Assembly: GCA_002104905.1 (NCBI GenBank)
Contig: MCFE01000279.1
Coordinates: forward strand, 1 to 64,000
Direction: 5' to 3'
DNA from: Basidiobolus meristosporus CBS 931.73
Taxonomy: Eukaryota > Fungi > Basidiobolomycota
Length of the DNA stretch: 64,000 bases
The notes under the pieces were generated by a model, which saw only the letters and a list, made by a program, of their open reading frames with translations, ran no database searches and was not told the origin of the DNA. Each line of letters opens with the position of its first letter. Position 1 is the stretch's first letter. This document shows, one piece after another, positions 4,406 through 61,584 of the stretch. A program made the position numbers and the translations under genes.

Positions 4406-7095
4406 ATTCTCCTCTACTAAATTTGAGAGGGCTGTCTTGAATCTCTTTACTTGTGATATGAATATCTTGATGGTTCATTATTATCAGCAAGTCTTGCAAT
4501 CTTTAGTCTGTCCCTATGCAATAAGTGTTCCCAGATATTGCCTTGTTTGTCCACTAGTTGGTAAGTTGCAAATGGATATTCTCTGATAATCTTGAATGGT
4601 CATGTCCATTGTGCCTCAAGCTTCTTCCAAGTGTTGTTTCTCAGCCATACAAAGTGTCCAACTATCAATGCTTCTGGTGCATTAGTCTTATAAAATCTCT
4701 GCTTCATCTTTTCTGCACCTTGAGAGGCTTTTGTCTCTGCCTCTTGACATCCTTGTTCTAGCTGCTGGTGTCAACTTGGCTGACTGAGTTCATCTTCTAA
4801 GGTGTCTGTAAGCTTTGGTTGTGTGAGATCTCCTGGAGTCCTTAGTTCACATTAATACACTAAGTAAAATGTCAATTATTGGGTGGTGTTGGGTACTCTG
4901 ACTCTGCATGCAGAGAGTGCTTGGTCTACATACTCATCCCATCTACTGACAACTCCATTTGCACACTTGGTCAGCAGTTTTCCAAATAATCCATTAAACA
5001 ATTCAGTGACTCCATTAGTTCTGGGGTGATATGCCAAGGTTTTCAAGTGTTTGATCTGCTGCATTTCCAGGTAAGCTTCCAATGTCTTTGCCATAAAGTT
5101 TGCACCTCTTTTGGATAGAATCTCTACAGGGCATCCAAACCGCATAAGGATCTCTTGGTAGATGAAACATGCAACTTCTAGTTCACTGGCTATAGTTACA
5201 GCTTTAGCCACAGGCCATTTGGTGGCATGGTCAATTGCTACTAGGATCCAACAGCTGCATTTCCTGGTAGTTGGCAGTCTTCCAATAAAATTGCTTCCCC
5301 ATCATTCAAATTGTTTTACAGGCTCCACAGGAAAGAGTTCAGCAATTCTCTGTGGTTGGCCTTGGTTGATTTGGCAATTTGGGCATGCTTCACTAGCTTC
5401 TCAAGGTCATGATTCATTCTGGGCCACCATGCTCTGGCTTTCACAAGGCTATAGGTTCCTTCAATTCCAAGATGTCCATATCCATTTTGTGGCTTATGTA
5501 TTAAATCCAGGCAAGTAACTCAAGGGCAATAGGCAATAGGGCTCCCATCAACAATTTGTTAGAGTGTTTCATCCTGTACTACAAATTTGCTGACTTCATC
5601 ACGGATTATCTTCTTGATATCTTCATCCACCTCAATAGGAATGGCTTGGTCCTCCAAGTACTTTGGTAATAGGCTAGGCCAATCTGATTCATGCACCAAG
5701 TTGAGTTGTGCAACATGTTCTAATCTTGATAAGGCATCAGCAACAGTGTTTTTTCCCAGGGCAGTAGACAATCTCCAGGTCAAATTGCTGAATGTATTCA
5801 CTCCATCTTGTTATTCTTCTAGAGAGTACTTTCTGAGTAAATATATACATGAGCAAGGCATGATCAATCTTTGCAGTGCATTTGACTCCTTCATTATAGC
5901 ATGTCCATGTCTTCTCTGTTAGCTTCTTCAAGACCTGTTCAATGTGCACCATGTGATCCTCTTCTGTCTTGCTGTATATCAATATGTCATCTAGGTAGAT
6001 TATCAAAAACTTGTCTAAGTACTCCTGGAAGTCAGTCTGCATAAGAGTAATGAATGTTGCAGGGACATTGGTGAGGCCCAGACTCATGACTATGTACTTA
6101 TAATGTCCATATCGGGTCCTGAATGCTGTCTTAGGGATGTCTTCTGGCTTCACCCTAATCTGGTTGTATCCTGACATGAGGTTAATCTTGCTGGAAATAG
6201 TGGCTCCATTAAGTTGGTCCAAAAGCTCATCAATCCAAGGTATGGGGTACTTATTCTTCATGGTAACTGAGTTGGGGGCTCTGTGGTCAATGCATATCCT
6301 AAGTCCTCCATCCTTCTTCTTCACAAAAAGACCTGGTGCTCCCCAAGGTGACTTGCTTGGTCTGATATATCCTAGCTCCAGTAACTAATATATTTGTCTC
6401 TTCATCTCTTCCAACTCCAATGGACTCATTCTGTAAGGTGTCTTACTCACTGGAGGGCTATCTCCTGTTTCAATGGTATGATCCACACTCCTGACTGGTG
6501 GTAGGCTTACAAGCTCATCTGGATATTTGTCTGAATATTCCTTCATAAGAGTGTGGACCTTCTGGGGTACTGGAGTAGAGGAATTCTCCTGTAATACTGC
6601 AATGAGGATCATTGGGGTACTTTTAATTAGTGCTCTACAGAACTGTGTCTTGCTAAGTTCACATGTTTCACACACACTGGAATTGAGCAAGTTGATATCC
6701 AGTCTGGCAGGTAATAGCTCATAGGTCTTGTTGTCCTTTTGGATCTGAGTAGTATGAGTTCTCCAGTTGATTGATGGATTACAACAGAATAGCCAGGTTT
6801 TCCCAAGTATAAGGTCAAACTTGCAGTTCCCAAATATATAGGCCTTTATATCTTCTTCTTAATCATTGATCTTCATCCATACTGGCTCAGTAACACGGTT
6901 GATTATGTGAGAGTTTCCATCAGCTGTTGAGACTGCAGTTGATTTGGTGGGTTCCAAGTTGATTCCAGCTTTCAAAGCAACTTGCCCTGACATGTACTCA
7001 TGCAATGCTCCTGTGTCAATCATGCTCTTGGCAGGTACTCCATTGATTACTCCATCAAGTACAATTTCATTTAACCAGCTTTTGGATGCTGAACT
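4040..7095 (-). mobile_element. Ty3/Gypsy retrotransposon copy A: 3' LTR, integrase, partial RT, protease; 5' half missing
   Basis: Minus-strand peptides: RT ([45 protein letters not shown]), integrase (AYHPRTNG), protease (AMIDTGA-like at ~7020). Domain order PR-RT-IN. LTR at 4040-4405 with PPT next to it. Confidence 0.9.
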
Positions 7096-11383: not shown

Positions 11384-12852
11384 TTTGTATTGTTTGTTGT
11401 CAAGACTACAAAGTTCACTGTTTGAGTTCCAATAGTGATATAAAGAGTAACACTCCTGCTTGCTGAGTCAGGTCCTTGGAATAGGGCTCTCATGCCTGCA
11501 CTTCAGTAACTTGTGGGGGACCATCTTTCTTCCTGGTCAGCAGGCATCTATTAGCATCACACTCTGCAGCTCCATCTCCCTATGAGAAAAAATTTTGATG
11601 ATCCCATTAATATGCTGTCACAAAATATTTCTCTTACTTTTCATGTATATAAATTGTTTTATTAATGTTTAAACTTCAGTTGTACCTCAATTGCCAATTA
11701 TAGTGACCTATATAAGTCCCTATACCCATCACTAACATTTAGGCCAACCCCACACTCAATAAGTAACTCTATTAAAATTCACCACTCAATAAGTATTTCT
11801 GCTGTTATGACCCTTTTCCTTGACTTCTGTAGGTACCCTACTGGTTTATGCCACTTTTCACTCACTGATTCTCATACATCCTGGTCTATAGCTGGTACTG
11901 CAAGGCTGAGCACTTTATCTGCCAGTATTTGCAATAAATTCTTGCTACATTCAAGTATGTTTTCTTAAGCACCACTGTTGAATAAGTGCTGCAACCTCTT
12001 GGTGCATCTATTAATGCTCCAAAATTCCACTGTAGGCACTGTGATAGTCTTCTAAGTTGTTGAAGTTGTTGCTTTGTCCATCAGTGGATTCTTTATTCTA
12101 TCTACAATGGAGGACATGGCAGCAGTGGTTGGCAGTTTCTATTCTCTGCAAGCTCATATACCTCACTGGGGAATGGCTCAACTCACTGGGCTTCCAATTA
12201 TTGAGAAAACAGCTGTTTTCTTGTTGATAATTCTTTGTGCCTATTATGGGATTAGCCTGTTCTGGACTGATGGTGTTAACTGGTGAGAACTGCAGCCTTT
12301 TCTCACATTTCCCTGTCTTTGGATGGGTTAGACTCTTTTCTCTTTACCTTTACCTTTATTACTGGCAAATTGTACACTACCACTTTGACCCAGTGCTTCT
12401 TGAATTGAACTATATTTTTTCTTGATGAATGCAGCATTGGTGCATCAATTCTTGCTCCCTGTCTCTTGCAAGTGTTACAAGTCTTGGTACAAGAGTTGTA
12501 GAGGAATAGGGAGCTTAGCTAGTATTGTATTCACTAAAACATGAACTGATTTTTACTGAGGTTCAAGCAGCTCCTTATATACATTTTGCCAGATCAATTG
12601 CTGAATGAATATATTTCCTGATGTAGGTTGTGGCTGATGACTCATTTGATTGCATCATCATCACCCAATAGACTTGTTCCGTTGGATAGTGCCACATAGT
12701 GCCAGCCTGTTTATGGTGCCGGATTGATCTGGCACTCTACGGCACTATCTAGCACTATAATTTCTACCATGATGCCAGTGGTATGATACAGTTGCTGGTA
12801 ATTTTACTCAATCTTACTTATGTTGCTCAGAATAGTGCTTTCCTTGCTTTAT

Positions 12853-13737
12853 TTACTCTTCATAATGCTCCAGACACATTTCTCTCAGTGGATGTCTTCT
12901 TGTATGAACATACTGTGCATTAATAAGTATCTTAACTATTTTACCTATTCTGCTGCTTTCTCCTATATATGACTTTCCTCTGTATTTACCTGCCAATATG
13001 CTGAATCTCTTCAGATATCCAAATGTGTGCTCTACCCTTACTCTGAAATGATTAAATATCTCATTGTAGAGCTTCTGCTTCCTGCTAAGCACACCATTCC
13101 TTGGCTTCCTATAAGCTGTAATACATCCTAATCTCTGACAATCCTCTCCTATATAGGCTAAGTCTGCCTTACATTTCTCCCCTCTACTGAATTCTGGATG
13201 ATTCTCTACCCAGAGTGCTTTGTCATGCCTACTTCCAGCAAATGGCCCACTAAACCAGATGATATTACCCTCAATGTCAAACAGTGCTTGAAACTTCACA
13301 CAGTGTGCCTTGTACTTTCCAGAATAAAAGTGCCTCTGCCCTCTAGAAGGTCTGTTAATCCTCACTGGGAAGGTATCCAAAATACTACTGATATGGAACC
13401 TGTTGCTGAACACTCTGGGATATTGAAGTCTATTGGAGCTTCTGAACCTAGTATTCCAAGCTTGCTCTGAGTCATTCATACCCTCTGCAAGGTGGTTCTC
13501 CATTGCTATCAGCTGGGAATGAAAGCTTCTAGGACTTTTGTTGCCATGGATGGTGGGATGAAACCTTGTAGGGCAATAGTTCTTATAATAGCAGAGAAGC
13601 TTGACAAGGGATCTCCTTGAGTAGATTGGGGTTGATGGTACACAGTACTTGGAATAGATCTCCTCTAGTGTGTCAAAAGGAAATCCAGTGGTAGTGATGG
13701 GACTGATGAGAAAAGACCATTCAGATGAGTAAGTCAT
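12853..13737 (-). CDS. PIF/Harbinger-type DDE transposase (DDE_Tnp_4-like), 294 aa, open
   Basis: Motifs LDTFPVRI.RP, FYSGKYK.HCVKFQ, GS.HD, ADLAY.G, YN......RVRVEH.FG.LKRF.IL. The DDE triad looks intact. No stop or frameshift. Confidence 0.9.
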   Translation of the reverse strand: MTYSSEWSFLISPITTTGFPFDTLEEIYSKYCVPSTPIYSRRSLVKLLCYYKNYCPTRFHPTIHGNKSPRSFHSQLIAMENHLAEGMNDSEQAWNTRFRSSNRLQYPRVFSNRFHISSILDTFPVRINRPSRGQRHFYSGKYKAHCVKFQALFDIEGNIIWFSGPFAGSRHDKALWVENHPEFSRGEKCKADLAYIGEDCQRLGCITAYRKPRNGVLSRKQKLYNEIFNHFRVRVEHTFGYLKRFSILAGKYRGKSYIGESSRIGKIVKILINAQYVHTRRHPLREMCLEHYEE

Positions 13738-14096
13738 ATTAAAATTGATGGATGATTGTATGGAGGCGGTTAGAATTGATTTGGCGCGATCTGCATTATT
13801 TATCTGATTTTTGATACATTATGGTTATATCTACATCAATTGCTATGTATCCCATCATTATGTTGCAAAAATCATCCGCAAACAATGCCTTAGTACTTTT
13901 ATTGATGCTTTAATCATAGGTCTATAATCAAATAGGAAATCTGCAATTGATGTGATCTGATCCGTGTCAATGCAATCCAAGATGCATCATGCATAATATA
14001 TGGAAAATTCAACAATCACATTAGTTTTCATATATATTTCATATAAGACCAGGTTGATGCCAATATACTGCTGTATAAGTATCCAAATCTGCTGCT

Positions 14097-15359
14097 ATGG
14101 TCCCCATACCAAGCCTCAACTCATCTTTAGTACAACCCAGACAAAACCCATCCCCCAGCTCACAAGCGCGGTCCGGACCAGAGAAGTCAATGTTGGATCT
14201 GTTCAAGTTCTTGCCAAATGATTTTAGTATGGCCCAAGTGTCTATGATGAGCCTTCATACAGATATTTGGGCACTACTGATTAATCTAGCAGAACTAGAT
14301 ACCTCAGAGAGTTGACAAAGATGGAAGAATTTGAGTGGAAAGCTGTGGCATGAGTTCTACATCAAGATGCCAGCCAATGTATGTAAAAAGATATATAACA
14401 AGACAAGTATTGAAATCAAGAATGAGCTGAGAGTGAGGGGATTTGACAAAGAAGCCGTGCGGGAACAATTTTGCACGCAATTTGCACAGTACAGGCCAGA
14501 CGCGTCTGTTTGTGCCTCAACTTTGGGAACCAAAGAGATTTTGAATGAGTTTTTGCCTCAAATGACTAATGCACTACATGATATATTAGTAGAGCTAAGT
14601 GGCTTCCAAGAGCAATATACGCAGGACTCATCCAGGCAACAGCTCCAAAGTATTAGACAGAGGGTAAGTGAATACCTTGAGGAATCAGATGGTGAGCTTC
14701 AGGAGGAAGAATACAGACCGTGAGCAACATCATCCAGATCGCGCCAGCATGCCTTGCTGGACTCCCTACCATCTCTTGCAACCACAGCGCGCCAGCGCAC
14801 GTCAGTCCACACCACGCCAACACCCTTTACCAGAACGCCCCACGTTGAGTCAACGTGCTTTGAGTCAATGCGCATTGGGTCAACACGCGCGCTTCAGAGC
14901 AAAACTACAAGAACTCGCCAAACTGCTCATTGAGACACAAGTCCATTGGAGCGGACCAAGTCGCGTCAACATGCAGCATCACATCAAACTCAGCCATGGG
15001 CCATCTCAACACGTCAAGGCGCACCTGCGCGTGCTGTTTTGCCTGACCATCAGCAAGTTACTTCTGGTGAACTGACTCATGATGACCAACATGAAGTGCC
15101 TCAACCACCGGAGCCCTTGGCAAGTAAAAGAACGCGTCAGCACATGGCACTACAGGCCGGTTCAGTTGGTTCAGTTGGAGCAATTCAGCGCAGCCAAGCT
15201 GCAGCATTGCACTCATCAACTAGGAGGCAAAATACTGACTACAAATACACAAGTAGCCAAGATGATAGTCAGCCAGGAAGTAGTATAGGTGTGCAAAGTG
15301 AGTCACTACCAAATGCTTCAGTAGTAATCCCTGTGAGAAAAAAACCCAGGAGAAGATGA
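14097..15359 (+). pseudogene. Second ORF of the PHIS element (putative Myb/SANT/MADF-like DNA-binding partner), 421 codons with three internal TGA
   Basis: ORF-track pieces 14097-14315, 14331-14723 and 14946-15359 share one frame, separated only by TGA at 14313, 14721 and 14931. W..L.....S.S[R]QRWKNL resembles a MADF/SANT recognition helix. C-terminal RKKPRRR is NLS-like. The domain call is inference. Confidence 0.7.
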
Positions 15360-18300
15360 TGCAATTGCTTTGAATTGCTCACATTTGTAATGATCCCAAC
15401 AACCCTTTTTTTTTGTGATCCAAATCAAGCCATTGCAAATCAGTGATCATCAAATTTTTGATATAAGTAATATCAAGGTTGTTTCACATTTGAGACAAAG
15501 CCCCTATAAATAAACACCCCGCATATATATACGTCATCTGTAATACCAGTGCAGCTATTGGATCTGTTTTGCTCCTACACAATTGCTTGTGTGCTAGCTA
15601 TGACACCTTGTCCAATCACTAGGATCAGGGATTTACTTGCTTAATGGGCAAAATGGGATATTTGATGGCAAATCAGGTAGCTTTTTCAGTAGTCAATGAG
15701 CCAATTGGGGGCTGCCAGCTTCAGGATACTTTTGGACCAATTAACCACTGAGATATCATCCAATTGGAGTCAGGGTAACCAAAATGGTAAGTATCAGTGT
15801 AGTTTATAGTGTGATACACATTTATTTCCATTTACATTAAAGAAACATATCCAAATACCGGATTTTACCTGCCATTATAGCGGTATCCAATTGTGCACGT
15901 GATGCAAACATTACAAGTTGGCGCAATCATCCGTGCCAACCTCATCGTGTCAGATTTTGCCATAGTGTGCAAGATCATCCCGCATAGTGCAAAATTGTCC
16001 AAGAACAATCCTGCCTTCTGGTAGCTATAATATTGCGCCTGATTGTTCTTTACAACCGCGCATTGCGCCGCACACCCTGGCACAGTACAATGGAACAAGT
16101 CTAATAAGTTGCTACTTAACATATCTATATTTGTCTGATATGGATCTGCTGACTCATATGCTGACTAATACTACTGATTTTGTAGATAACACTGAAATAC
16201 AGATAGGCTAAGCATGTAACAAATTGATTTGACTCAAAACTGTTCTAACTTAAACATTCAAGCGGTAGATCATAATATTATCCCCTACTAAAGTTAAAGG
16301 GGTCCTCCTGAATCTCTTTTCTGTGATACCAATATTTTGATGGCTTAGTATTGTTAGCAAGTCTTTCAAGCTTGAGTCTGTCTCTATTAACTAAATCTTC
16401 CTGGATATTCCCTTGTTTGGCCACCTGTTGGTAAGTTGCAAATAGACAATCTCTGATGATCTTGAATGATCCTGTCCATTGTGGCTCAAGCTTCTTCCAA
16501 GTGTTGTTTCTCAGCTATACCAAGTTCCCAACTGTCAATACATCTGGTGATATAGTCTTATCAAATCTCTGCTTCATCTTTTTTGTACTTTGAGATACTA
16601 TGGCCTGTGCCCCTTGATGTCCTTGTTCCAGCTGCTGGTGTCTACTTGGCTGACTGAGCTCATCTTCTAAGGTGTCTGTAAGCTTTGGTTGTGTGAGATC
16701 TTCTGGAATCCTTGGTTTACATCCATACACTAAGTAAAATGGCAATTATTTGGTGGTGATGTGTACTCTAGCTCTGCATGTAAAAAGTGCTTGGTCTATA
16801 TACTCATCCCATCTACTGACAGCTCTGTTTGCATACTTGGTCAGCATTTTTCTAAATAATCCTATAAGCTGCTCAGTGACTCCATGAGTCTTAGGGTGCT
16901 ATGCCTAGGTTATCAAGTGTTTGATCTACTGCATTTCCAGGTAAGCTTCCAATGTCTTTGCCATAAAGTTTGCTCCCCTATTGGATAAAATCTCCACAGG
17001 GCATCCAAACTTTATAAGGCTCTCATGGTAGATGAAACTTGCAACTTCTTGTTCACTGGCTACAGGTTCAGCTTTAGCCACTGGCCATTTAGTGGCATGG
17101 TCAATTGCTACTAGGATCCAATGGTTGCATTTCCTGGTGGTTGCCAGTCTTCCAATAAAGTCAACTCCCCTTCTTTCAAGCAGTCTTAAAGGCTCCAAGG
17201 GAGAGAGTTTGGCAACTCTCTGTGGTTGGCCTTGGTTGATTTGGCAATATGGACATGCTCTCATGAGCTTCTCAATGTCTTGTTTCATTCTTGGCTACCA
17301 TGCTCTGGCTTTCACAAGGCTATATGTTCCTTCAATTCCAAGATGTCCATATCCTTTGTGTAGCTTATGTATTAAATGCAGGCAAGCAACATAAGGGCAA
17401 TGGGCAATAGGGCTTCCACCAATAATTGGATTGAGTGTTTCATCCTGTACCACAAATTTGCTGGCTTCACCCTGGATTATCTTCTTGATCTCTTCATCCA
17501 CCTCATTAGGAATGGCTTTATCATCTAAGTACTTTGGCAATAAGCTAAGCCAATCTAATTCATGCACCATGCTGAGTTGTGCAACTTGTTCTAATCTTAA
17601 TAAGGCATCAGCAACCGTGTTGTTTTTCCCAGGGTAGTGGACAAACCCCAAATCAAATTGCTGAATATATTCACTCCATCTGGTCATTCTTCAGGAGAGT
17701 ACCTTCTGAGTAAGTATGTACCTGAGTGAGGCATGATCAGTCTTGACAGTGCACTTACACCTTCAACATAGCATCTCCAGGTCTTCAAGCAGTGTATTAT
17801 GGAAAGCAATTGCATCTCATGCACTGGATAGTTTTGTTCTACTGCGTTCAGCTTCTTGGATTCAAAGGCAACTGGGTAGTCCTTTCCCTTGTGTTCTTGG
17901 CTCAACACTCCTCCAATTGTATAATCTGAAGCATCTGTGCACAGAGTAAACTCTTTTCTGAAGTCAAGTATTCTTAAGCTTGGCAGCTTAGCAAGTTCAT
18001 TGTTGAGTATCTGGAAGGCAGTCTGATATATCCTTGCTCCAGTAACTGATCTATTTGTCTCTTCATCTCTTCCAACTCCAATGGACTCATTCTGTAAGGT
18101 TTCTTTCTCACTGGAGGGCTGTCTCCTGTTTCAATGATATGATTGACATCTCTGACTGGTGGTAGGCTTGCAAGCTCATCTGGAAATACATCTGAATATT
18201 CCTTCAAAAAAGTCTTGACCTTCTGGGGTGCTGGAGTTGAGGAATCCTCCTGTAATACTGCCATTAGGGACATCTGGATGCCTTTTCTAAGTGCTCTACA

Positions 18301-19738
18301 GAACTGTATCTTGCTAAGTTCACTTGTTCCACACATACTGGAATTGTCCAAGTTGAAATCCAGTCAGGCAGGTAATAGCTCATAGGTCTTGTTGTCCTTC
18401 TGGATCTGAGTAGCATGGGTTCTCCAGCCAATTGATGGATTATAACAAAATAGCCAGGTTTTTCCAAGTACAAGGTTAAACTTGCAGTTCCCAAATATAT
18501 AGGCCTGTAGGTCTTCTTTGTAGTCATTGATCTTCATCCTTACTGGCTGAGTAGTACAGTTGATTATGTCAAAGCTTGCATGAGCTGTTGAGACTGAAGC
18601 TGATTTGGTGGGTTCCAAAGTGATTCCAGCTCTCAATGCAAATTGCTTGACATGTACTCATGCAATGCTCCTGAGTCAATCATGATCTTGGCAGGTACTG
18701 CATTGTTACTCCACCAAGTATAATAGCTTTCCTGAGTTAGAGGTCATCTGGGATGGGTATTCTTCTGCCATGTGGAAGGGGAGCTCTGAGTCTTTGTCAA
18801 GTTCATCCTCCATGTTACTATGCTCAAGGGCTTTATTCTGGCTGAAGGTTCTTGATGACTGGTGTCCATTTCCCCTCTGAGGGCAGTACTTTGTAATATG
18901 TTGCTGCTGGTGGCAATTAAAGCTATGTCCTTTCTTCTTATGTTCTTATGAGGTTGGATTCTTCTGTATAATGTCTAGTTTCACTGGCACTGCTTCTGAT
19001 TGTCTTCTTTCATAATGATTGCAGCCTGTCTGATTAGTCATTGTGGCCTTCCCAACTCCAAGTATAGCTGAGTGATAGTCAATGCAATCTTGATGGCTTC
19101 TTCAATAGTCTGAGTTCTTTGGTAATGCACTTCCTTACCAGTTCTTTCTTTTAACTCATGAATAAAGTAATCCACTTGCTACAGGGGTCCATTCTTTCAA
19201 TTTGTCCAAGTAGACATCTATGTTCATAGATGTACTCTTGAACCATTTCTTTCTGTCTGGGTGTCATCAACTTTCTTCTTAGTAGTGTCTGCTGGTGCAA
19301 AGGTTCAAAAGCATCCTGAATATCCAACACAAACTCATCCCAGGTGGAGATTGTAGAGCATCCCATCATGGTGGCTGACCTGGTCTTGTTGTGGTACCAT
19401 TGTAGAGTTGCATCTGCCAGGTAAGAGGCTGTATAATGTAACTTGCTTTCTGGAGCAATTCCCTTAGCCTTGAATGCTTCTTCAATCTGGAAGAGCCAAG
19501 TTCCCAGGTTTTCATTGACTCTACCATGATACCAGTTGACCTTTGTACTAAAGTTGCTCTTGACAGGGTTTTGCTGGTTCTCCACCATGGTAGTTATTCC
19601 ATGTTGCTGCTGGCTAAGCATCTGGAGTAACTGTTGCCATTGGGCCAGTATTTGCTGCATGGCATTCTTCCATTCTGGATTCTGTGACATATTAGGGGAG
19701 GCTTCTTCTGTCTTCAGCAGGGAGGTTTCTGGTTACTG

Positions 19739-22350: not shown

Positions 22351-25300
22351 GCAATATCAGCTTTAGAGCATAAACTATGAAATGATAACACATTCAATAT
22401 ATGATAGGTGTTAGCCAATCAATATGATAAAGTAAAAGTTAAATATTTCAAGCTGCCGCAGCAGTGTGGCTTCCAACACTTGAAATACCAAGAACATAAA
22501 ACTCAGAGATAAATTTGGTGAAGAGATACAACACCTTATGCCGTAAATAGCTAGATAATGCAGTATATTTATAAGCAGCTAAGAGTTGCATTGGGTGTGC
22601 AAAATGGTATTAAGTACTAGTATGGAGGTATTGTCAGCCACTTCTTGATTCAACATACTTACCTAAATATGTGCAATTGTATATCAGCATCACAAGTGCC
22701 AAGTGAAAGATACTATAGAAGGGCACTTCAAGATGATGAGCAGAATTTGTGCTTGCTTGGACAAGTTCAAAGCTGCCTTAACCTCCAGTACCTTGTGATT
22801 TTGGTGAGCATTAGTCAAAATCTATCATGTGTAGAAATCAGAGTGAGATTGTAACTTTTACTACCTCTACCTATACTTTGATGACTTTTCCATTGATAAA
22901 CAATTATGCTTTTGAAAGAGCTTTAAGAACTGCATTGAAGCTAGGAGCCATTCAGAACAGCATGACTATCTTTAAGCCCGCTGCAAGTAAGTAAAAAGTG
23001 GTAGTATTTGATGGCAATTCATAATAGCTGATTTGCTCTTTCAGTATCCTGAGTGAAAGAGAAGCAGCTCGATGATTACTATATTTAATGAAGAAATATG
23101 CCAAATAACGCGAAACTAATAGTGTGAAATGTAGGTAGTCTTGGCTAAAACGTATAATCAAGCAAAGTTTGTACGCAGATGGGATCGTGATGGACCAAAA
23201 TTCAAAAACCTGGTATCCGCAGGTATTAAAGGGGACTAGACTATTAGTATCAATACTGCCAGTGGAGTATTTTGGAGTGGTATGGATCGTAACGTACTGT
23301 ATGGCCCTTGTATTACGGAAAACACTAGCCGAAATACTTGAAGTTCACTTTCCTTCATGACAACGTGCTATTGTCAGTTGATATCATTTCAAGTCCTCAT
23401 TGTGAATATGATAACTACACTGTCACGATTCATTCATTTCTATCACTGGCTGAATATAGCCAGAAGGAAGCTAGGGCCAAAATTGCAAAACAGCGGTCGG
23501 AATATGGTCTGGTGACCAATAAACTACTAATGGTGCCTCAGGTGATGTTCACACTATTTTTAGTCTGTGTTATATGCTGTATTTATATTTTGTGCGGTCA
23601 AACTTGCAGGTGAGTATACAGTTCTACACACAGAGTGATTCATAAACCTAATTAGTATCTATTTCGAGTGGTCTTTGCTACGGACAAGACAGTTGATTCA
23701 GATTACCTTGCTCTAATCACTATTATAGTAACCTCCTCCACGTAATAAGCAATCCACCCTACGTACCTTGGGACATAAGACAAGTACTGCACCGGATGCT
23801 TGTGTAATTTCCTTGTCAAATGTTTAATTACCATGAATCAAGTGCCTCGCAAGCGGTATAAAGAACCTGCCAACGCTGGCATTCATAGAAGTCCCACCCT
23901 TTGATATTGATCCTTATCTCAAGGCTACAAGCCTTATTGTGAAATTTTGGCAACTTCCGTTGTTCCTGCGGATCAACAGTTTGGAAGTTATGATAGATCT
24001 ATTTTAATTCGAATCTGTCCAGACTTTGTCCGGAGATTTTGGTGCAATCGCTTCACGCATGGACACAAAGGGATAGACCTAAAACCCATGGGTGCAGAGT
24101 GCACCTCGAAGACCTATTGGCTGGCCCTGGCAAACCCTAATCACCATGCCGTTTCACCTGGCTCTTCTTAGAATATCCTGGGCTACCGTCAGCAGCTTAG
24201 CTTCACCACACATCCAGCCTTACAGTACCAGGATGGCACAAATGGCTATATGCGAGTACGACAGCGAAGCTTGTCCACTCGGTAGTGTAGGCGGTAGCAC
24301 AAGAACGCCTGGTTAGCAAATTGCCGGAAGACGGATTTTAGCATTCAAGCTCCATCATAAATCAGGTTAAGCTAATCGGAAGATGCAAATGAAATTCCAC
24401 ACAGCAATCCCTTGCAGGCGAGGACCAAATGAAACACTTGCTGAAGGCTATATGTGGATCAGCCTATACGGGAATACGTTCCCTCCAACATCGGATCTGA
24501 GCTAAAACGCCCGATCGGCAAGCGCCTATGACTAATCTATTCCAATCGGTAACTTTGTGCTTTACCAGGATTCCCCAATCAATCTGCGATGAATATGGGT
24601 ATATGAGACCACAAAAGGAGAACAAAAGTCAGATTGCTTACGATCGATATAAACTACCTATAATAAGCCAGAATCACCTCCGATTGACTGGAATGCAAAA
24701 TTGGTTACCATGCTGAGGACACAACAGAATACATCGAAATGGAACCAGATACTCCGTCTATTCCTCATGCTACGCAGAGAGATCCAGACTGAGGTGGCAG
24801 CACCTCAGAAGTTAGGAATACCTGGGTGGAACGCCCGTCCCACGTTCACTCTAGCAACCATATCCTGTCCAAACCTTGAATACTCTGTATTACTGAGATA
24901 CGGGAGAGGCCGACTCCAATCATTGAAGCTGCTAATTGGCGTAAGGAATAGACTTTTGTAAACTATGAAGGCTCCACGACGGAGCAATTTGGGCATTCAC
25001 ATGCATCCCAGAGATATCGAGTCACCGCCATTTCATCTTGTGCTCCTTCCCGTCCCCTGTCATGTCCAAGCATGCAAGATTGCGATTTCCCCAGCATTGT
25101 TGAAGAGACACTGCCAGTATATTTCTCAACCTCGATCATTAAGCCTCTTGTGTACCTGCAATATTCTTCCTTTTTGAATCTCATAGCTCTCGGCCAATCA
25201 CTACGCCTGATCGAATCAATAGGATAGCGATGTGCATGCGTAGGGCATTTGGCTCGAGAAGATTTCTTTGGGCTGTTTTCGAATAATCATCCTGCCATCA

Positions 25301-26444
25301 CTGCCAAAATTCTTAGCCAACAGTACCAAGTGCCACATGAGATGCAATTATGGAAAAGCAGCCATTCTGCAACGTTGAATGATAATCACGCAGATACCAT
25401 ATCCACCCATCAGCTAAATATTGGCAATCCGAATATGGCTATAATGACAGTAGCGCTCGCCAATCAGAGTGAATCGAGTAAGTTTTTGCAGCTGGCAACG
25501 CATTGATTTCTGTCGGGAAAACTATGGGACTCTTGAGGCTGGTTAGCTTTAACGAAATCCTTCCTGCATAATTGTCGAAATTTTCGCCGGCCACTCAGAT
25601 ACCTTGTTGCTCAGCGGGATGGTTTGTATGGCACCTAACATGGGCGATGGGAAGCCTAATAGCCGTTGCCTTACCAGCGCCAGCAACGCGTCGGTCATGA
25701 CCACCCAGCTCCCCACAGCTACTCGGTGACTACTGCGATGACTGGTCTATACTTACAGCTGCGCGTATTGCCAGTGTACACAAGGCGGGTTTATCCCCAT
25801 TTATTAATACAGAAATTCTTGTTTGTTAACTGGGATTAAAATTACACATTCGCAAGCATGAGTAATGCATGTTTTAAAGCGGAATTTCTCCGAAACATTC
25901 TAATATCAAGTGTAGCTGCCATGCGGCTCCGTAATTCGTGATGGGCCATCACCATCAGCTGACCCGAACATCAGATTATCATAATATATATATTGTCCGC
26001 ATAATCTAGGAGCAATCGACGGATACCGGACCATATGGGGAACATTGAAATTCATGTTCGTTGCTAAGCCACTAGCACATTGTGCTGCTTCGAGTGGGGA
26101 TCACCAACAATCTAGATGTTTCCCGGTCGGGACAGGAAATTTTCGGAATTTCGTTTTATTCTCAATTGATTTATTCAAGTGTGTGTACAAATTAGGATAG
26201 TGTCACGACTACCAAAATTTTCGAAAAACTGTCTGCGTTGAACCAATAGTGATGATATATAGCTGTTATGGCGGAGACAGGCGGCGAACTGTAGCCGAAC
26301 TGGTACGTTCGTACGGGGTAGTCATAATGTGGATTTAAAAATAGACGGCGAATGGGTACTGGCACTAAATATTATCGATGCTGAAAAATAAGTCTAGATG
26401 AAGGGTTGGTAATAAACAATCTTCCAGTTACTGAAGTTTGATCA

Positions 26445-28856
26445 TTACACAACAGAATGGCGATGGTGCGCAGGAGATACCCTCGGCAAATTTGTGCTGG
26501 AGGGGGTTAGATGATTCATATTGTATGATCCGTTACCCTCACGGAAAGTGGGCTCAGGAACATCAACTGCGACATATTCCTTCTCGGTGGATCCTGCTTC
26601 ACCATCAGGACTGGTGTTCGTTGGGCGTGTACTTCCCCAGCTGAAATCATCCATTTTCCATAGACTATACAGCGGTACCACAATAGCCCACAAAGGCAGA
26701 CCAAACAGGAACACAATCCACCAACCAAATTGTGTGCGCCGCCCGGCCATGAGAGCGATTAATCCCGGGAGGCAAAATAGGAATATAGTAAAGGAAAGAG
26801 AAAGCCAAGTGAGATGTGTCCAGAAGCCATATATGGCAATCACAAAGCCAAATGGCAAAAAGAACGGAATGGCGGCTGCTGACCACAGCTCAGACACCAT
26901 GACCAATTTGAACCAGAAGCGCAAGCGGAAAGATGGGAATGCTGGGGGATTGACGAACAAGTCAAAGTGGTTGTGGATAAGCGAGTTGGTCCATCTTCTG
27001 CGCTGGCAAAGAAGTACGCTGAGAGTGTCGGGTACGGTGGTTGTGCATACAGCGGCGGGGATATAGCGTGTTCTCATATCATTCAGATAGCGAATAACTA
27101 GGGTGCATAGATAACGATCTTCACCAATGGTAAGGAGATTGTGTTCTCTCATGAGTTTAGGCTCAGCCATGTAGTCTCTCATAATGCGGGGATCAAGAAC
27201 AGCAGGTTTTATGACCTTCTTGCCTGTTCGTGGATCCTTCTCGTGCCTCTTCAAGCGATAAACGGTAAAGCAGCCAGAGAGAACCAGTACATTGGCATAG
27301 AACGATTCGAAGGATTTGAGTAAGCAATGGGTCAAGAAGTACTCGAATACTTGAATACTGGTAATATAGGTTTGTCTGCGGTTCTCTACTTTAGTCTCGC
27401 CACAAACGCCTGAAAGAGTAGGGTCCGCTTCAAGGGAATGAACCAGGATATCGAGGCCATTTGGTCTGATATAGGTATCGGCATCAGCAACCAGTACGTA
27501 TTCAACATTCTTAGCATTGCAACCAATACGTCTCAATGAGCTATACATTTCAGCAAACATTGGGCAACTGAAGCGAGTCTTTGGACGTCTGTAAGAATTT
27601 CCGGAAATCGATGCGTTGCTTGAGACAGGGGTAGAATCGTAGGCTGATGATAGGGAGGTGACACTGAAGCCAGCACCAGGTCCAGCTCCCCACAGCGATA
27701 GGTCTTGGATATAGGCACTAGTTCTGGCGATTTCTATATTGGCAGCTTTAGCTCCGAGGTTACCATCAAATTCGTAAGCAGTATTCATGAAAGGATTCTG
27801 GTCCTCCGATTCTATCTTCTTCATCACATCATCGAGGAAAAACCCGTTGGCCTCTCTGAAGAAGTTGTAAACAATCAGTTGCGAATCACGCTTAGAACGG
27901 TTTCCTGGTTTGGCTGCTCCTTTCTCGGTCTCCAGACCAACCTTGATGATAAGTAGGTATTTGATTTTTCTATTGGGCTCGTCGTCGGGGGAGTAAAATC
28001 CGGTGTAGACGCAGGCCTTGTTCAATCTGGCATCACCGTGTCCCACGGATTGATACATCAGGGGTTGAGCCTGATCTTCACATTTGAAAATGTCCTCCAC
28101 GAGAATTCTCGGAGTGGATTTGTCATTCCCAGATCCTGTTACATTCCCGTCGGAAACGACGAAGAGTAATTTCGATTCGTCGTCATATTCACTCTGTACA
28201 ACAGAGTTGACGGTCTTGAGAATAACCTCCTTGCTTTCACTGTAGCATGGGATATGCAACGCCAGCAGCTTCTTGGGCTTTTCTGCTTCCGGAAGGGGAG
28301 ACTTGTAAATCTTTCCTGACCGCTGGACAATGATGGCAGCGATCACATTCAGCACCATCACACCGACGGCGCAAACCATGAATACAATGTAAACAACATC
28401 AAGGAAAATGCAGTAAGGCTTATTCACAGTGAGGATCCCCTTCTTCACTCCTTCAGTCTGCTTGCAGATGAAGAATGGCAATACGAACAGGAGAGCAATC
28501 ATAAGCAGCACAAGGAACACCATAGCACGGAAATAACGGATCTTTTCACGCCACGCTTCACGCTTCTCCTTGGTGTCCAGACCGCATGGCTTCAGGAACG
28601 TCTTGATGAAGAAAAAATCCACAACACTGTTAACTTTAATCCAGATGCTTTGGGCTTTGGGGGAGGTGATGGGCTTTTCTATAGGCGGAAGCTGATATTT
28701 CTCATCCCAATAAATCTCGTCATCGTTCATAAGTGTATCGTCGTTGGAACTTATGGAATTTCTGCGTTCTCTTGTTCCAGACATGTCTTGGTATGTGACT
28801 TTTCTTTGTGTCCCGCACTGAGGAGGGGAATGGGTGGAGCTGTTCCCGTTTGACAT
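26445..28856 (-). CDS. chs: Chitin synthase, division-2 type (Chitin_synth_2-like), 803 aa from the first ATG, apparently intronless
   Basis: GT2 motifs PCYSES, VSDG, DADT, VCGET, IQVFEY, LSGCFTVYR, GEDRYL, QRRRWTNS. Two N-terminal and several C-terminal hydrophobic helices. The ORF track starts at a TTG (29015); the first ATG is at 28856. Normal CpG content. Confidence 0.95.
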   Translation of the reverse strand: MSNGNSSTHSPPQCGTQRKVTYQDMSGTRERRNSISSNDDTLMNDDEIYWDEKYQLPPIEKPITSPKAQSIWIKVNSVVDFFFIKTFLKPCGLDTKEKREAWREKIRYFRAMVFLVLLMIALLFVLPFFICKQTEGVKKGILTVNKPYCIFLDVVYIVFMVCAVGVMVLNVIAAIIVQRSGKIYKSPLPEAEKPKKLLALHIPCYSESKEVILKTVNSVVQSEYDDESKLLFVVSDGNVTGSGNDKSTPRILVEDIFKCEDQAQPLMYQSVGHGDARLNKACVYTGFYSPDDEPNRKIKYLLIIKVGLETEKGAAKPGNRSKRDSQLIVYNFFREANGFFLDDVMKKIESEDQNPFMNTAYEFDGNLGAKAANIEIARTSAYIQDLSLWGAGPGAGFSVTSLSSAYDSTPVSSNASISGNSYRRPKTRFSCPMFAEMYSSLRRIGCNAKNVEYVLVADADTYIRPNGLDILVHSLEADPTLSGVCGETKVENRRQTYITSIQVFEYFLTHCLLKSFESFYANVLVLSGCFTVYRLKRHEKDPRTGKKVIKPAVLDPRIMRDYMAEPKLMREHNLLTIGEDRYLCTLVIRYLNDMRTRYIPAAVCTTTVPDTLSVLLCQRRRWTNSLIHNHFDLFVNPPAFPSFRLRFWFKLVMVSELWSAAAIPFFLPFGFVIAIYGFWTHLTWLSLSFTIFLFCLPGLIALMAGRRTQFGWWIVFLFGLPLWAIVVPLYSLWKMDDFSWGSTRPTNTSPDGEAGSTEKEYVAVDVPEPTFREGNGSYNMNHLTPSSTNLPRVSPAHHRHSVV

Positions 28857-31800
28857 ACCACGAATGTTTATCAAAGAGAGAAGAGAATGGAATGCGATTC
28901 TCCGAGGGGGATGGTGTGAAAAGGAGTAGCCAACGCTAGGTTGAGATGCCCTTTTCGCTGAGGTGCAAGCCCACTTATATATGACTTTATCTGATCGTAG
29001 GTAGGACCAAAACACTGATGCGTCCGAAAGTCAATGTATAATTCAGTTACAGAATCACCATTTCATAGCCAGCCTTTGTAAGACAAGGCCGTTGGATCTT
29101 ACCCAAATTTTTGATAGCAATCACTTGGTAATATGATCATGTTTGCCGTTTTTTAAATCTAGAATATCGCATAGTTCAAAAGATCCACCATTGGTAGTTT
29201 CCTCTCCCTCATTAATGATTCAACCCCATCATAGCATCTTAGCGCCTGGCATCTTTCTACAATATCGAATGAATTAATTGTTGTGTGACAAATACCGGGT
29301 TCGGGGCCGTATTAACAAGGCATTTTGATTTAAGGAAATTGATTCTTCGACAAATCTTCATTCACATCAGCATGCACCAGTGCAAAGTTTTCGAGCGAGA
29401 ATTGTATTCCTTGGGAATCCATTCCGAATCACTTCGATGTCAAACCATCCTTCGCTTATATTCGCATCACCACACCGCCGACGGCTTCGAGTCGATCGAG
29501 ATGGGGCGCCTGTGCTCGGGGCAGAGCTACTGGCTGCGAAACAGTATGCTGTAGCCGTGGTTTGTTGGCAAAGCAGTGTGTGAAGCCAGGAATTCTATAC
29601 TCTTGCTACAAGCGGCTGCGTATGTCCTATGAGGATCGCTGCCCTGAGGACAGTGTTGCGCGTCTCTTCTCATCTCTTCCGCGAGTATTCCAGGCAGATC
29701 AGATTGATAAAAAATGCTCTCCAACTCGTTACGAGCATCCGGAATTGCATGGCTTCGATTGAACCTATACTAGTAATCACCTAGTTGGTGATTTCTGTAT
29801 CAGACATCAAAAGATCTGTGTGACCGACACCTCTTGCCATCATGCATGCATCCCCGTGTGTAGTAATTGTTGGCTACTGAAATATCTTCCCTTCTCCCTC
29901 AACATAAATTATGGAAGTCGCACAAAGAGCTAACAATAGATTTGAGGATCCAATATTACGATCAATAGTCAGCAATTATATGTGGCTGAACAGGGACATG
30001 GCTGACCCTATTGCGACATCAGTAAAATGTTCAGTGATTGTATCGTAATGTATGATGAGAGTGCACGTCTCTATGGTTGGGTAATCCAGAAGAGGTGGCC
30101 TTGTTTGGAATATGAATGATGGTGGTGATATGTCATCTGGTTTCATTTTAATCGATGCCATGCAACAACCAGTTTATTCTTGGGTTTGGTGTGGTGTCCT
30201 GAGGCAAGCGATGCGCTCGCCTTGTATTAGATAGGTCATAGCCAGGGTGTCGCCATTTTGGTCAACATCGTAGTCGCCCCAAAGGTGAGCATAGCAATAC
30301 ACCTGCAGCACTTGAACATTGAGCCCATTCACCCTGGTGGTATGCTCAGACCGATCAAGTGGGTGGTCTAATCTGTATATAGTTAACTTCTGATTTGGAG
30401 AGAGCGTACGGTGACCTCGATTTGCCTATGCGGATGGGTGTTTGGGCGGCAATATAATGCGCTGGACTTAAGTGTACAAGAACTGGTTTGTTCACTGCTG
30501 TGCTCGACATATACATACCAATCATGCATTGTAAGTTTAACAGGATATACGCGTTTTCTGTGCACCCACATACAATTCAGATGGTCTCCATTCCAATCAG
30601 ATCCGAAGGCTGAACTTTTTCGATATTTTTCCCAGGTGGAGTGATAGTGCTTCCCCGCTCCTGATTTGTTGGTGAGAACATATATCAAGATATAGTAATT
30701 CAATTCTTGGACATCTATTCCCAAAATATCCATGATAAGCCAATTTCGTACACCCAAATTCTATTATTCAGCTGTAATACCCACAGATATCTATTGAGGT
30801 ATAATTCTCCAGTTGTCTCGTAATCAAGAGTGAGGTAAACTCGTGGTTTGCCACTGGATTATTTCTTAATTCCATCGGTGTCACCTGTCCTGGTGGTCGT
30901 CTGCTTACACCAACCTCCAATAGTTGTGATCAGTGACATCCTGGTTCGGTGTAGCTACAAAATGGATCCACACCAAGCGTTGGATCTCCGATGTCCTCAG
31001 TATCCTGGTGTTGAGGGTATACGTGGCAAGCCAAAAGTAAGGATTAGTAGATGGAAAGGGATTTTAAGGCCCAATACCACGAATAAGTTGCATAGACCAT
31101 GGGTGGGCTCCTATCATGCCACACTTGATCAGTGAAGAGATTGATGTCAATTGGGAAACTACAGCCAAGGCCACTGGTGCTCAGGCATGATCCTAATGTA
31201 GAAAAATCGAAGACGCTGTTGGTGGATGCCATATATTCCTTGGTATGGAGTTATCCGTATGTCTATTGTTAAATGGGTTCTTGCTCACATACGTCAGTCC
31301 CGCAGGCCTGTCCAGCCAGATTGCTGCTTTGAGATATTGCAAACTTCGTGGAAGGATTCGTTGCATACCTAGATGCGGATATTGGCCATGGCTGTGAGGA
31401 ATCAAATCGTTGCACAAGAACGGCACATTTTATATGCAGTGCAGCGTCTACCGGTTTTGTAAAAAGCCTAGACATTGGAAACAAGGGCTCCAACTCTTCT
31501 CCTAGCAGCTAACAACCCCCGCACAGACCCGATGGACTAAGAGAATGAATATTTCATACTAATTTCATTCTGCAGAACTTTTTTGCTGTCAAAACATGAG
31601 TAAGAATACCTTGTAAGCAACCCCACTGATTCTGTCAGTCCATTGTTGCAGTAAGCATTATCTCATTTTATATGTTCAGGGAAAAAGGCTTATTTCTCTC
31701 TATTATCAGTTGCTGAAGGCGTCAAATTGGATATTTATTGCCACGCAGCTAAAACGGAGCCCCAAATACTATACGCAAAAAGCATAAGCTAGTAGCCAAC

Positions 31801-34800
31801 AGGATATCCTCTAATGATGAGAAGCTAAACTAAAGAATACCATATATCACGTTAGTTCTTGAAGACCTTGTGTGAACTACATGCAATATCTAGTTACTTA
31901 CAAATAAAGCAAAACTTGCATTGGATGCTTGGAAAACTGATCAACCTCCAAGCTTGAAGTTGCTTGTTATGCATTGACAGGTGGTACTTCCACTAATATG
32001 TACACCTCATTAAGCCATCCACAAGGTTATGTAGTATATTGCATTTTAAAAATACACAACAGGCATGAAAGCTGCTTTATTACATCAACACTGTCTATTC
32101 AACCCCACATACAGCATTAATCACTAATCATGCCAAATTTCTATGGAACATAAGCCTATGCCATATGCCAAATACCATATTATCATTTGAGCTGCATATG
32201 ATTAGTGTACCTACATAGTCATATAGTAGAGTAAAATAGCATGTAAGTCAACTATGTGTTTGCTCTAGCTGCTAGACTCTTTAAAAGACATTGTCTTATG
32301 TGGATATATCTTACCAATACATTTGCAGCACATCAATGTCTCAGATTGCTTTTCAGCCTTGCATTATCTCTGATGCCTCTTTCAGGTCTCTTGAGCCTTC
32401 AAGGTATGTTTCTTGCCTCTTTAAAATATCACCAGATAAATGATTGGCTAATTTCAAGTTAACTGTTTTCATGTGTAAAACTAAAAGCTCTTTTTTTAGT
32501 ATATAATAGCATTTGTATTACATAGTATAATATATGTAATTAGGGAGAAAGGAGTAATTGAAACCTCATTAGGCTAATACTAGCATTTCATGCCACTGGC
32601 TTTAGCTGCCTAAAAGAAAACATATTTTTCCAAGGTTCATAAAGAAACAAGTGAGCATCATCCATTTCTTCTAGTTCTCCAGGTCACTTATAATACTCCC
32701 TAGAATCCAGCTACAGGTTACAAGCCCCAAACTTGTTGTCTTTGGCTGTCCACCTTGCTTTGGTGAATTGTGCAGCTTGTTGGACTGCCTGGCTAATAGT
32801 ACTACAATGAAAACCAACATTTCAACTGCCATTACATAGACTATGACCAAGGGAAATAGCTGTGAAGACAAAGGCCTTGCCTTTGAGAGGCTCTATAAAG
32901 GTTTATAGTTGTGCCAGAGGGTATAGATCTGATCAAGAGGAGAGCAAAGAAATATGATAGGCTGAGATGCAGCAGGAGTAATATGATGAAGAAAGGTATG
33001 TAATCTCAGCAAAAAGCAATCACAAAGTTACCAGGTCTTTTATCTCTGAGTCAAGATGGTGATCCTGAAATATTAGTCAGTTGAAGTTCTGGATTACATT
33101 TGATTTGAAGGAAATCAGGGACATTATCATTCCCAAGAAATGGATAATAACATTAACAGATCTGCTATCACTCATGATAAATCAAATATTGCACAAGTTG
33201 ACCTGCTAGCCAGAGGAAAGATGAAGCCTATTGATGGAAATAGACTTATGTATTAGTATGCCTGGAATCCAAGGATCACTTACACACCTATTGGAAACTC
33301 CCAAAAGTTGAAGCAAGGCTCAATATTCTCCACACACCAAGCAAGATAGAGTAGCAAATGGGTACAGTAGTAGCAGAGATCTGTGCATTCAGCTTTTTGT
33401 TTGGAATATAGCTGCTCAAGTCCTGTTACAAACTCTTTGCACAAATGCTGTAGATGTGTCATGCTGGCATTTGTCATCTGCTTCTGGATAAATAGTCCTA
33501 CAATGTTGACATATGACTCCTATTGCTTCCAATGTACTCTTGGTAGGAATGGCTTCAGAAGGCCATTTGAATAAACACATATTCAGTTCATCCAGTCCTT
33601 ACACTTTTATTGTTGCATATGCAAATTAGTGTTGATTGGACCCTGTGAGAAGTACTTAGGGTAGCAGATACTCTGTAAATTCTTGCCAATTCTTTGAAAT
33701 TTCTCCAGTATCTCAAAGGGCGCATTTAGCTTGAATGCTCTATGTACAACTTGGTCACCAGTATAGGGATAATGTTGATAACCAAATGCATTTCTCCCAG
33801 TGGAAAGCTTTTGCTTCAACAGATACCCTCTATCTTAAGTATCTCTGGTGTCCAGTTAATGACATATTCCAACCATTGGCTTATAGCTTGCCAACTTTGC
33901 TGCATTTGCATGCTGACTTCTCTATGTTCTCTCTGTGGGAATATGATGTTCTTAGTGTTGGTGTTTGATTAATAATAATGTGTTTGAGTTATGGAGTAGA
34001 TCCCCTGGATCTCACACATATGGGAGCAATACCATTCATTGTGCCCAGAAAGGCTTGCTATCTTGCCAATGGCTGGGGTATCTCCAATGCAGATCATGAT
34101 ATGCAATTTTACATGAAGGCCATTTACTGTTATCCTGCTGGAAAGCATACAAAACTCACCCAGCAATGGATACAGGAAGCTATCCAGGTTGGGTGGTGAT
34201 TTAGGCCCAGATACCAGTGAGAATACCATCAGATTTCTGCTCTGATACTGCAAAACAGGTGGCCAATTCAGGTTGATGAGAATCAGTAGCCAGCAGGATT
34301 TGCTGGTAGAGTACTTGTTTAATGAGAATCCATCAGGTGCCATGGCAAAGGCATGGTGTTACATACCTTCAAAGTAGCTCTTGCTTCTTAGCTGTTTGTG
34401 ATGTTTGCCATCAAATATATTGGATATGTTTGTGCTTGATTGATACTGGGTGTGATACTTTACAGCTTCACAATATTTGTTGGACTGCATGAGCTTCTTT
34501 ATACAGGGTATTACCAGAATATATGGGGAGGGTGAACAATGTTTTCCCCCAATAGATGTGGATTCCTGACAAGTTGGACACCTTGCAATGGTGGCATTTT
34601 CTGATGTGAATGCCATGCAACTGTTAAAACATGCTGGTATCAGGACAGTCTCTGAGTCAAATGTTGCCAGCTGCATGATAGTTTTTCACTTATACAATAT
34701 ATATGGTAAGTTGCATCCTGGGATGATTTTGGCAAGAAGCAGCAGTAAATCCTCAAAGCACTCATTACTGAAATGCACCACTTCTCCAGCCACATTATCA

Positions 34801-61516: not shown

Positions 61517-61523
61517 TATAAAA
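61517..61523 (+). promoter_or_regulatory. Possible TATA box of KEX2
   Basis: TATAAAA about 65 bp upstream of the likely ATG (61585). Motif only. Confidence 0.35.
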
Positions 61524-61584
61524 TTCGCGAGTGTATATGTGTCGTTGTTCACAAGTGGTAATTCTGGGACTGGTACTATTGTCC

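Follow-up and report, generated by a model that had tools for sequence, protein, structure and literature searches.

Transposable elements (TEs) of the basidiomycete Microbotryum undergo a hypermutation that resembles repeat-induced point mutation (RIP), and they show a paucity of TpCpG at sites where a change would be non-synonymous (Hood et al. 2005, via PMC3318451; Horns et al. 2017, PMC5381629). Variants that lose their target sites are proposed to escape this defence (PMC3318451, PMC5381629), and the preference for TpCpG is reported for Pucciniomycotina (PMC3318451). For fungi outside the Dikarya, the only report found is a tentative suggestion of RIP from dinucleotide indices (PMC10515909). 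Here we describe a locus in Basidiobolus meristosporus CBS 931.73, a member of a genus for which huge genomic expansions of PIF/Harbinger transposons have been reported (PMC5751038). The window, that is, the whole stretch analysed, comprises 64,000 bp (assembly GCA_002104905.1, contig MCFE01000279.1, positions 1 to 64,000, forward strand). It contains a transposon that is assigned to PIF/Harbinger by its terminal inverted repeats (TIRs), its AAT target-site duplication (TSD) and its DDE_Tnp_4 domain, and whose transposase gene is free of CpG, whereas the divergent partner gene, open reading frame 2 (ORF2), is not.

The locus resembles the Microbotryum case in that repeats take C-to-T changes with a TCG preference while single-copy genes are spared, and in that the TE lineages are poor in target sites. 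It differs in that the host is a zoopagomycete in which CpG is eventually lost from all contexts, whereas Microbotryum is a basidiomycete with a strict TpCpG target. In addition, the element is a cut-and-paste DNA transposon, and its purge is complete over 1 kb, stable across subfamilies and confined to one of two genes. The idea of target-site shedding is already known; the present case differs in the host phylum and the type of element, in how complete and how old the purge is, and in that only one of two genes is affected.

As in classical RIP of Neurospora and other ascomycetes, C-to-T hypermutation is restricted to repeats and TE genes are inactivated by stops. However, classical RIP prefers CpA and raises TpA, whereas the target here is CpG and TpA is under-represented (0.81). 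CG- and CHG-poor plant retrotransposons (ONSEN) and the CpG-poor coding regions of vertebrate retroelements are poor in the dinucleotide that is read by host silencing. These elements escape from methylation silencing, whereas the element in the window would escape from mutational destruction, as judged here from the sequence alone.

The usual TSD of PIF/Harbinger elements is TWA. The element shares with the two-gene PIF/Harbinger transposons a DDE_Tnp_4 transposase, TIRs, a 3-bp TSD, a divergent second gene and a high copy number in Basidiobolus, but its TSD is AAT and its ORF2 has no detectable Myb/SANT match. In the literature consulted, we found no description of a CpG mosaic within PIF/Harbinger elements, and nothing specific on methylation or CpG in Basidiobolus.

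The CpG-free tract and the intact transposase gene

CG dinucleotides are present at 12740 and 13767 and nowhere between them, and 12742–13766 is therefore free of CpG. The transposase gene within this tract has neither NCG codons nor a C|G step across codon boundaries, and its Arg codons are AGA (16) or AGG (11), with no CGN. The encoded protein matches Pfam DDE_Tnp_4 (PF13359) with E = 1.5e-22. In an alignment of 15 sequences, consisting of the window protein and 14 relatives, D121, D172 and E236 as well as R97, R129 and R232 are invariant and present. The CpG gap and its coordinates, the 27 AGA or AGG codons, the open frame, the DDE triad and the conserved Arg residues had all been reported in a preliminary description of this DNA, and each was reproduced on recounting. 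Its further claim that this is not the passive decay of CGN codons was also borne out: the Arg content (27 of 294 residues) is normal, neither the DDE triad nor any of the conserved Arg residues has been lost, and a sister subfamily, described below, uses AGR codons at the same positions.

Without depletion, the tract would be expected to contain 41.6 CpGs; if CpG were as frequent in it, context by context, as elsewhere in the element, it would be expected to contain 20.7, for which the Poisson probability of zero is 1e-9. If the tract were like the surrounding old TE DNA, 1.6 CpGs would be expected, with a probability of zero of 0.19. The transposase encoded by host codon usage would contain an expected 43 CpGs, and shuffling of its synonymous codons created 12 ± 2.6 CpGs at codon boundaries, with zero never reached in 5000 trials. 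CpG is thus avoided as a dinucleotide, and not only through the choice of codons. Whether the absence of CpG can be ascribed to chance thus depends on the yardstick, which is either the element itself or old TE DNA. The anomaly is that the CpG-free tract is an intact, conserved gene and contrasts sharply with the rest of its own element.

Along the window, CpG content falls into two sharply distinct classes. Over most of its length, the CpG observed/expected ratio (o/e) is about 0.03 and TG and CA stand at 1.35; the CpG-containing exceptions are 23–32 kb, 61–64 kb and part of the element itself. The host-gene blocks at about 23000–32000 (including a chitin synthase open reading frame (ORF), 26445–29015) and 61000–64000 (a kexin-like subtilase) have a CpG o/e of 0.7–0.9, and the boundaries of the compartments are less than 1 kb wide. 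CpG-free runs of at least 1027 bp occur 17 times in the window; with the probability of 0.19 against old TE DNA, this makes a CpG-free kilobase ordinary for TE DNA here. Furthermore, the broken Ty3-type reverse transcriptase/RNase H, gag, and Copia integrase and reverse transcriptase, spread over three frames (5737–6324, 19151–19690 and 57295–59423), are CpG-free and use only AGR for Arg, so that CpG-free coding may be general for TE genes in this genome. The preliminary description was accurate in its observation, but its reading overlooked the CpG-free state of the entire TE compartment and the strong context bias of the surviving CpGs, with TCG gone and GCG kept.

In the part of the element at 13767–16103, TCG has almost disappeared (o/e 0.08), ACG and CCG are at 0.46, and GCG, at 1.22, is undepleted. 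In the host genes (23.5–31 kb and 61–64 kb), TCG is at 0.81–0.91 and is, at 0.91, the commonest context, whereas in old TE DNA TCG is at 0.01 and the other contexts are at 0.04–0.06. The order of CpG loss is TCG >> ACG = CCG > GCG, and the commonest surviving tetranucleotide in the element is GCGC (16 of 59). The same type of change is seen within the element: the units of a tandem repeat in ORF2 differ by CG>TG and CG>CA, and the dinucleotides at 15976/7 and 16040/1 are CA and TG in the window copy but TG and CA in most others, which implies an ancestral CG at both sites. Within this one window, CpG change is restricted to repeats and single-copy gene regions are spared. The loss of CpG with a gain of TG and CA resembles the footprint of deamination of 5-methylcytosine.

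The sister subfamily and more distant relatives

The closest relative in the databases, protein P0001 (294 amino acids, 61% identity), is encoded on Logan contig L001. Its ORF contains one CpG, with 25 AGR codons and one CGC for Arg, whereas its 365 bp of flanks contain nine CpGs. A near-identical protein, P0152, is encoded on contigs L006–L008, where the ORF is CpG-free in each case, whereas the 667-bp 5' flank in L006 contains 24 CpGs (o/e 0.96). The TIR end AACGGAACAAGTCT, the subterminal repeats ATAGTGCC and the upstream motif GATCGCGCC are common to the sister contigs and the window element, and these four contigs thus belong to its transposon clade.

Synonymous change between the window and L001 transposase genes has reached saturation (dN 0.30, dS about 1), with differences at 31 of 54 fourfold sites. 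Arg is shared at 21 positions, 20 of which carry AGR in both genes, with AGA and AGG swapped at 13. The Arg positions that are not shared are paired with K, S, L, N, T or A, and never with C, W, H or Q. As judged from these substitutions, the transposase has long been under purifying selection while being CpG-free. With synonymous sites turned over about once, we roughly estimate that about five CpGs per lineage would have been regained if unopposed.

In contrast, four outgroup contigs from other sources (L002–L005, 33–42% identity) have a CpG o/e of 0.83–1.5 and 12–30 CGN Arg codons. At the columns where the window protein has Arg, the outgroup codons are CGN in 26 cases and AGR in 12 (of 38), and the codon for the invariant R232 is CGN in 4/4. 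The target motif is thus synonymously absent from the window transposase (0 CpG in 885 bp), while its outgroup homologues carry CpG. The comparison with the sister subfamily and the outgroups does not reveal a CpG-rich consensus from which this copy departed by chance, an outcome that would have undone the claim. CpG-free coding is a trait of the lineage, which probably predates the separation of the two subfamilies and persists to the present. In two of the distant Harbinger relatives, a small partner ORF lies beside the transposase (L003, 22–825, minus strand; L005, 1305–1550, minus strand), and both of these elements are CpG-normal throughout.

The sister contigs also bear on the prediction that the CpG-free gene is immune to the damage that strikes its surroundings. 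When repeats of high copy number are assembled, the contigs are in part consensus paths, and the comparison of L006, L007 and L008 therefore gives polymorphic sites among copies and no clean pairwise history. The three coding sequences differ at 0–1 of 885 positions. Between L006 and L007, 19 of 294 upstream positions differ, and 12 of these pair CG with TG or CA, at the 12 CpG sites that this stretch holds, whereas the coding sequences differ at 1 of 885 positions. Single flank sites have changed in opposite directions between contigs (ACGCC/ATGCC/ACACC and TCGA/TTGA/TCAA), and the CpG in the TIR reads CG, TG, TG and CA in the four sister contigs, L001 keeping CG and L006–L008 being decayed. 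The predicted immunity is thus seen in these contigs, with CpG-specific divergence nearly everywhere in the flanks beside an unchanged coding sequence.

The partner gene and the architecture of the element

ORF2 starts with an ATG at 14097 and ends with a stop at 15357, and the only in-frame stops between 14079 and 15357 are the TGA codons at 14313, 14721 and 14931. The preliminary description had given about 37 CpGs and three in-frame TGA codons; the CpG count is exactly 37, of which 14 fall in CGN Arg codons, with CGA absent among these, 16 in NCG codons and 7 at codon boundaries. The C-terminus contains RKKPRRR, which resembles a nuclear localisation signal, and the N-terminal domain (PNDFS..DIW.LL.NLAE..S[R]QRWK.LS..LW.E) is separated from the partner ORF of L006 by many synonymous differences. 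By its sequence, ORF2 is a real gene.

The TGA at 14313 lies within this conserved domain and opposite an Arg of L006 (in S-R-Q-R-W), and is therefore a genuine interruption rather than part of an intron. The preliminary description had explained each TGA as CGA>TGA. This holds insofar as the TGA at 14313 replaces a conserved Arg, but an origin from CGA is unproven, the codon in L006 being AGA; a CGA ancestor at this site is plausible. If the ancestors were CGA, their contexts would be TCGA, the fastest-changing one, for 14313 and 14931, and GCGA for 14721. Among the 40 of 1023 variant positions listed, the window copy has ten apparent private changes, and the TGA sites are absent from them; the three TGA codons may thus have been inherited rather than being fresh hits. 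A candidate in-frame intron of 84 nt at 14664–14747 (GTAAGT...CAG) would remove the TGA at 14721, which could lie within it. In the GC-rich segment of ORF2, an alternative frame is free of stops for 135 codons (14668–15075) and avoids two of the three TGA codons; it could be a chance product of GC-rich DNA or an alternative exon frame. An alternative genetic code was rejected, as the transposase gene ends with TAA and ORF2 itself ends with TGA.

The identity of the ORF2 product was sought in several ways. Four pieces of ORF2 matched no Pfam family at E up to 1, no homologue was retrieved with the 135-amino-acid piece, and BLASTP against the partner ORF of L003 gave no match. The Atlas feature search showed low recognition of ORF2, with only unrelated dynamin-like and DUF matches. 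The Trp-spaced N-terminal domain is only suggestive of a Myb/SANT-like partner. Two ACGCGT sites are present in ORF2 (14500–14505 and 15132–15137), a sequence that we take to be that of the fungal MluI cell-cycle box.

The features of the element are listed in Table 1.

Table 1. Positions of the element's features in the window
Feature	Position	Strand	Remarks
TSD, left copy, AAT	12667..12669	.	Same AAT after right TIR
Left TIR, AGACTTGTTCCGTTGGATAGTGCCA, with CpG at 12680	12670..12694	+	AACGGAA core kept in sister L001
Subterminal region: ATAGTGCC-type repeats, CpGs at 12720 and 12740, then CpG-free part 3' of transposase stop	12695..12852	-	
Transposase ORF, 294 amino acids, DDE_Tnp_4, 0 CpG, 27 Arg all AGA/AGG	12853..13737	-	
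CpG-free tract, 1025 bp: ORF, 111 bp past stop and 29 bp before start	12742..13766	.	
Intergenic region between the divergent genes, 5 CpGs, with GATCGCGCC at 13783–13791 (-)	13738..14096	.	
ORF2, accessory gene, 421 codons, 37 CpGs, TGA at 14313–14315, 14721–14723 and 14931–14933	14097..15359	+	
Conserved N-terminal domain of ORF2, first TGA within	14214..14357	+	Alignment to L006 partner ORF
GATCGCGCC, second copy, inverted relative to copy at 13783–13791	14737..14745	+	
15-nt tandem repeat, 3 units, consensus TTGAGTCAACGCGCA	14845..14889	+	
Right TIR	16078..16102	-	CCATTG vs CCGTTG of left TIR
TSD, right copy, AAT	16103..16105	.	

The TIRs are 25 nt long, and AAT flanks both ends. Both ORFs lie within this TIR- and TSD-bounded element, and thus arrived in one insertion, as the preliminary description had proposed. 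AAT or ATT is also found beside the TIR ends in L006 and L008 and at 48138–48161 of the window, and the usual TWA target was not seen at any of the TIR ends examined (window element, L006, L008 and 48138–48161). The subterminal motifs ATAGTGCC and CCGGCAC are common to the window element and L001. The region between the two genes is presumably a bidirectional promoter, and GATCGCGCC, which holds two CpGs, one of them in TCG context, is invariant 5' of the transposase in the window element, L001, L006, L007 and L008; selection may have preserved it as a promoter or binding site.

The copy number was assessed by aligning the Logan contigs of four runs to 12400–16400. In one run, 29,456 contigs match this interval at an identity of at least 80%, and 6,022 at an identity of at least 99%. 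Many contigs contain joints from 12668/9 to 16112/3, which correspond to the unoccupied insertion site in further copies of the repeat that flanks the element. The window element is probably a young copy, and the PIF/Harbinger DNA transposon to which it belongs is present in very high copy number. A domesticated, HARBI1-like host gene was rejected on the basis of the TIRs, the TSD and the thousands of copies. Two metagenome scans for copies of the window family elsewhere returned no relative, and a shorter transposase query gave only P0001.

The element is inserted within another very high-copy, CpG-free repeat (12400–12669 and 16106–16400). In the 64-kb window only one further TIR of the family was found, a decayed solo TIR at 48138–48161 (minus strand) with two mismatches and its CpG read as CA, followed by AAT. 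Motifs like ATAGTGCC lie near it, at 47900. It may represent one end of an older copy, or a miniature inverted-repeat transposable element.

Origin and consequences of the mosaic

The explanation that we favour, and consider probable, is that CpG is lost from TE DNA by C>T and G>A changes, that the transposase gene has been purged synonymously under purifying selection, and that the other parts of the element take the damage. TE DNA, and not host genes, loses TCG first, then ACG and CCG, and GCG last. Every CpG of the transposase would have been removed by synonymous change under purifying selection before the subfamilies split. The transposase of new copies could then not be struck, while damage would fall on the TIRs, the subterminal repeats, ORF2 and the promoter, all of which still carry CpGs; in the window copy, a stop in place of a conserved Arg, at 14313 at least, breaks ORF2. 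The comparisons above establish CpG-free coding across the lineage, purifying selection on the gene, CpG-specific divergence of the flanks next to an unchanged coding sequence, and the order in which contexts are lost, whereas it is an inference that selection for robustness among copies or families, rather than mutation pressure alone, drove the purge. As for the proposal in the preliminary description that the transposase was pre-emptively recoded, the gene is recoded and not decayed, but robustness selection is not separable from mutation pressure combined with purifying selection, which leads to the same end state. CpGs in the motifs conserved across the subfamilies (GATCGCGCC, the TIR core and CCGGCAC) are probably kept by function.

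Several observations weigh against this explanation. Of the 37 CpGs in ORF2, 23 could be lost silently and are still kept, and the promoter and the ORF2 N-terminus of L006 are undepleted, TCG sites included. Since ORF2 and the promoter are not purged, uniform CpG pressure with selection fails to explain the mosaic, and the unpurged ORF2 fits cleanly with neither evasion selection nor mutation pressure. Non-CpG differences among the sister contigs are also commoner in the flanks (2.4–3.4%) than in the coding sequence (0.1%), so that the contrast between them partly reflects ordinary constraint or consensus-like contigs. Finally, the window transposase carries two private amino-acid changes relative to the bulk of copies, one of them at a conserved hydrophobic position: K190 (13169; M in the others and in L001) and S90 (13469; L in the others), neither of which is CpG-related. 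The transposase is presumably active, but an open frame alone does not imply an active enzyme. Sequence context alone was rejected as the cause of the mosaic, as about 21 CpGs are still expected in the tract after context correction. Besides the turnover of modules and regional methylation, both discussed next, family-level selection on the catalytic gene only is a candidate explanation for the part of the mosaic that remains.

The mosaic might alternatively reflect the age and turnover of modules, with a slowly evolving transposase that has reached CpG equilibrium and a promoter and ORF2 that evolve fast, are exchanged or duplicate their motifs and thus never reach it, without any selection for robustness. 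In line with this, conservation is lowest in the GC-rich 3' half of ORF2, the contig depth at 14678–15213 is halved in runs X1 and X2 and near zero in X5 and X6, this interval contains the 15-nt tandem repeat of a CpG motif, and the surviving CpGs are mostly GCG, the slowest-mutating context. However, the same mosaic is found in a second subfamily at a dS of about 1, the N-terminal domain of ORF2 is conserved between the subfamilies and yet CpG-rich in L006, TCG included, and the context-corrected expectation for the transposase tract remains at about 21 CpGs. We regard turnover as unlikely, although less so than a regional difference in methylation or mutation, in which only the transposase body would be targeted in propagating copies while the promoter and ORF2 would be protected like a CpG island until the copy is silenced. 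The decay of CpGs in ORF2 and at the right end in 10–22% of copies (at 15134, 15136, 15899, 16057 and 16069), and in L007 and L008 as well, indicates that these regions are not intrinsically protected and makes a regional cause improbable, even though the tract begins 29 bp 5' of the transposase start and ends in the subterminal repeats in both subfamilies, and the promoter holds the conserved CpG motif GATCGCGCC.

Passive decay of the window copy after its insertion, with the frame left open by luck, is very improbable. The tract is statistically like the surrounding old TE DNA, and stops arise by CpG decay only from CGA>TGA, so that a CGA-poor ORF can stay open. However, the normal Arg content, the intact conserved Arg residues and DDE triad, and the equally CpG-free coding sequence of the sister subfamily are at odds with such decay, as are the CpGs retained in the left TIR and subterminal repeats of this very copy. 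Furthermore, among the 40 of 1023 variant positions listed, the transposase has three majority differences from the other copies, none of which is CpG-related.

A broader proposal, which extends the favoured explanation and which we advance only tentatively, is that an early-diverging, non-Dikarya fungus possesses repeat-restricted, TCG-first CpG hypermutation, that a Harbinger lineage has counter-adapted by purging its catalytic gene, and that the unpurged partner gene and cis-acting sites are the battleground. Under such counter-adaptation, every copy would be a potential source of transposase, however mutated it may otherwise be, and the CpGs of the partner gene and cis-acting sites would possibly be functionally required motifs.

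The system lends itself to testing: copies of graded age number in the thousands, one gene of the element is CpG-free and the other CpG-rich, and the fungus can be grown in culture. If the purge reflects only an equilibrium between mutation and selection, it would still mark the duration and strength of CpG loss acting on TE lineages. If it is adaptive, the element would be a clean natural case of the mutational robustness of a mobile element against a sequence-specific defence, in which one recoded and one unrecoded gene provide an internal control, and repeat hypermutation of the RIP-like or CpG-directed kind would then reach into the Zoopagomycota as well.

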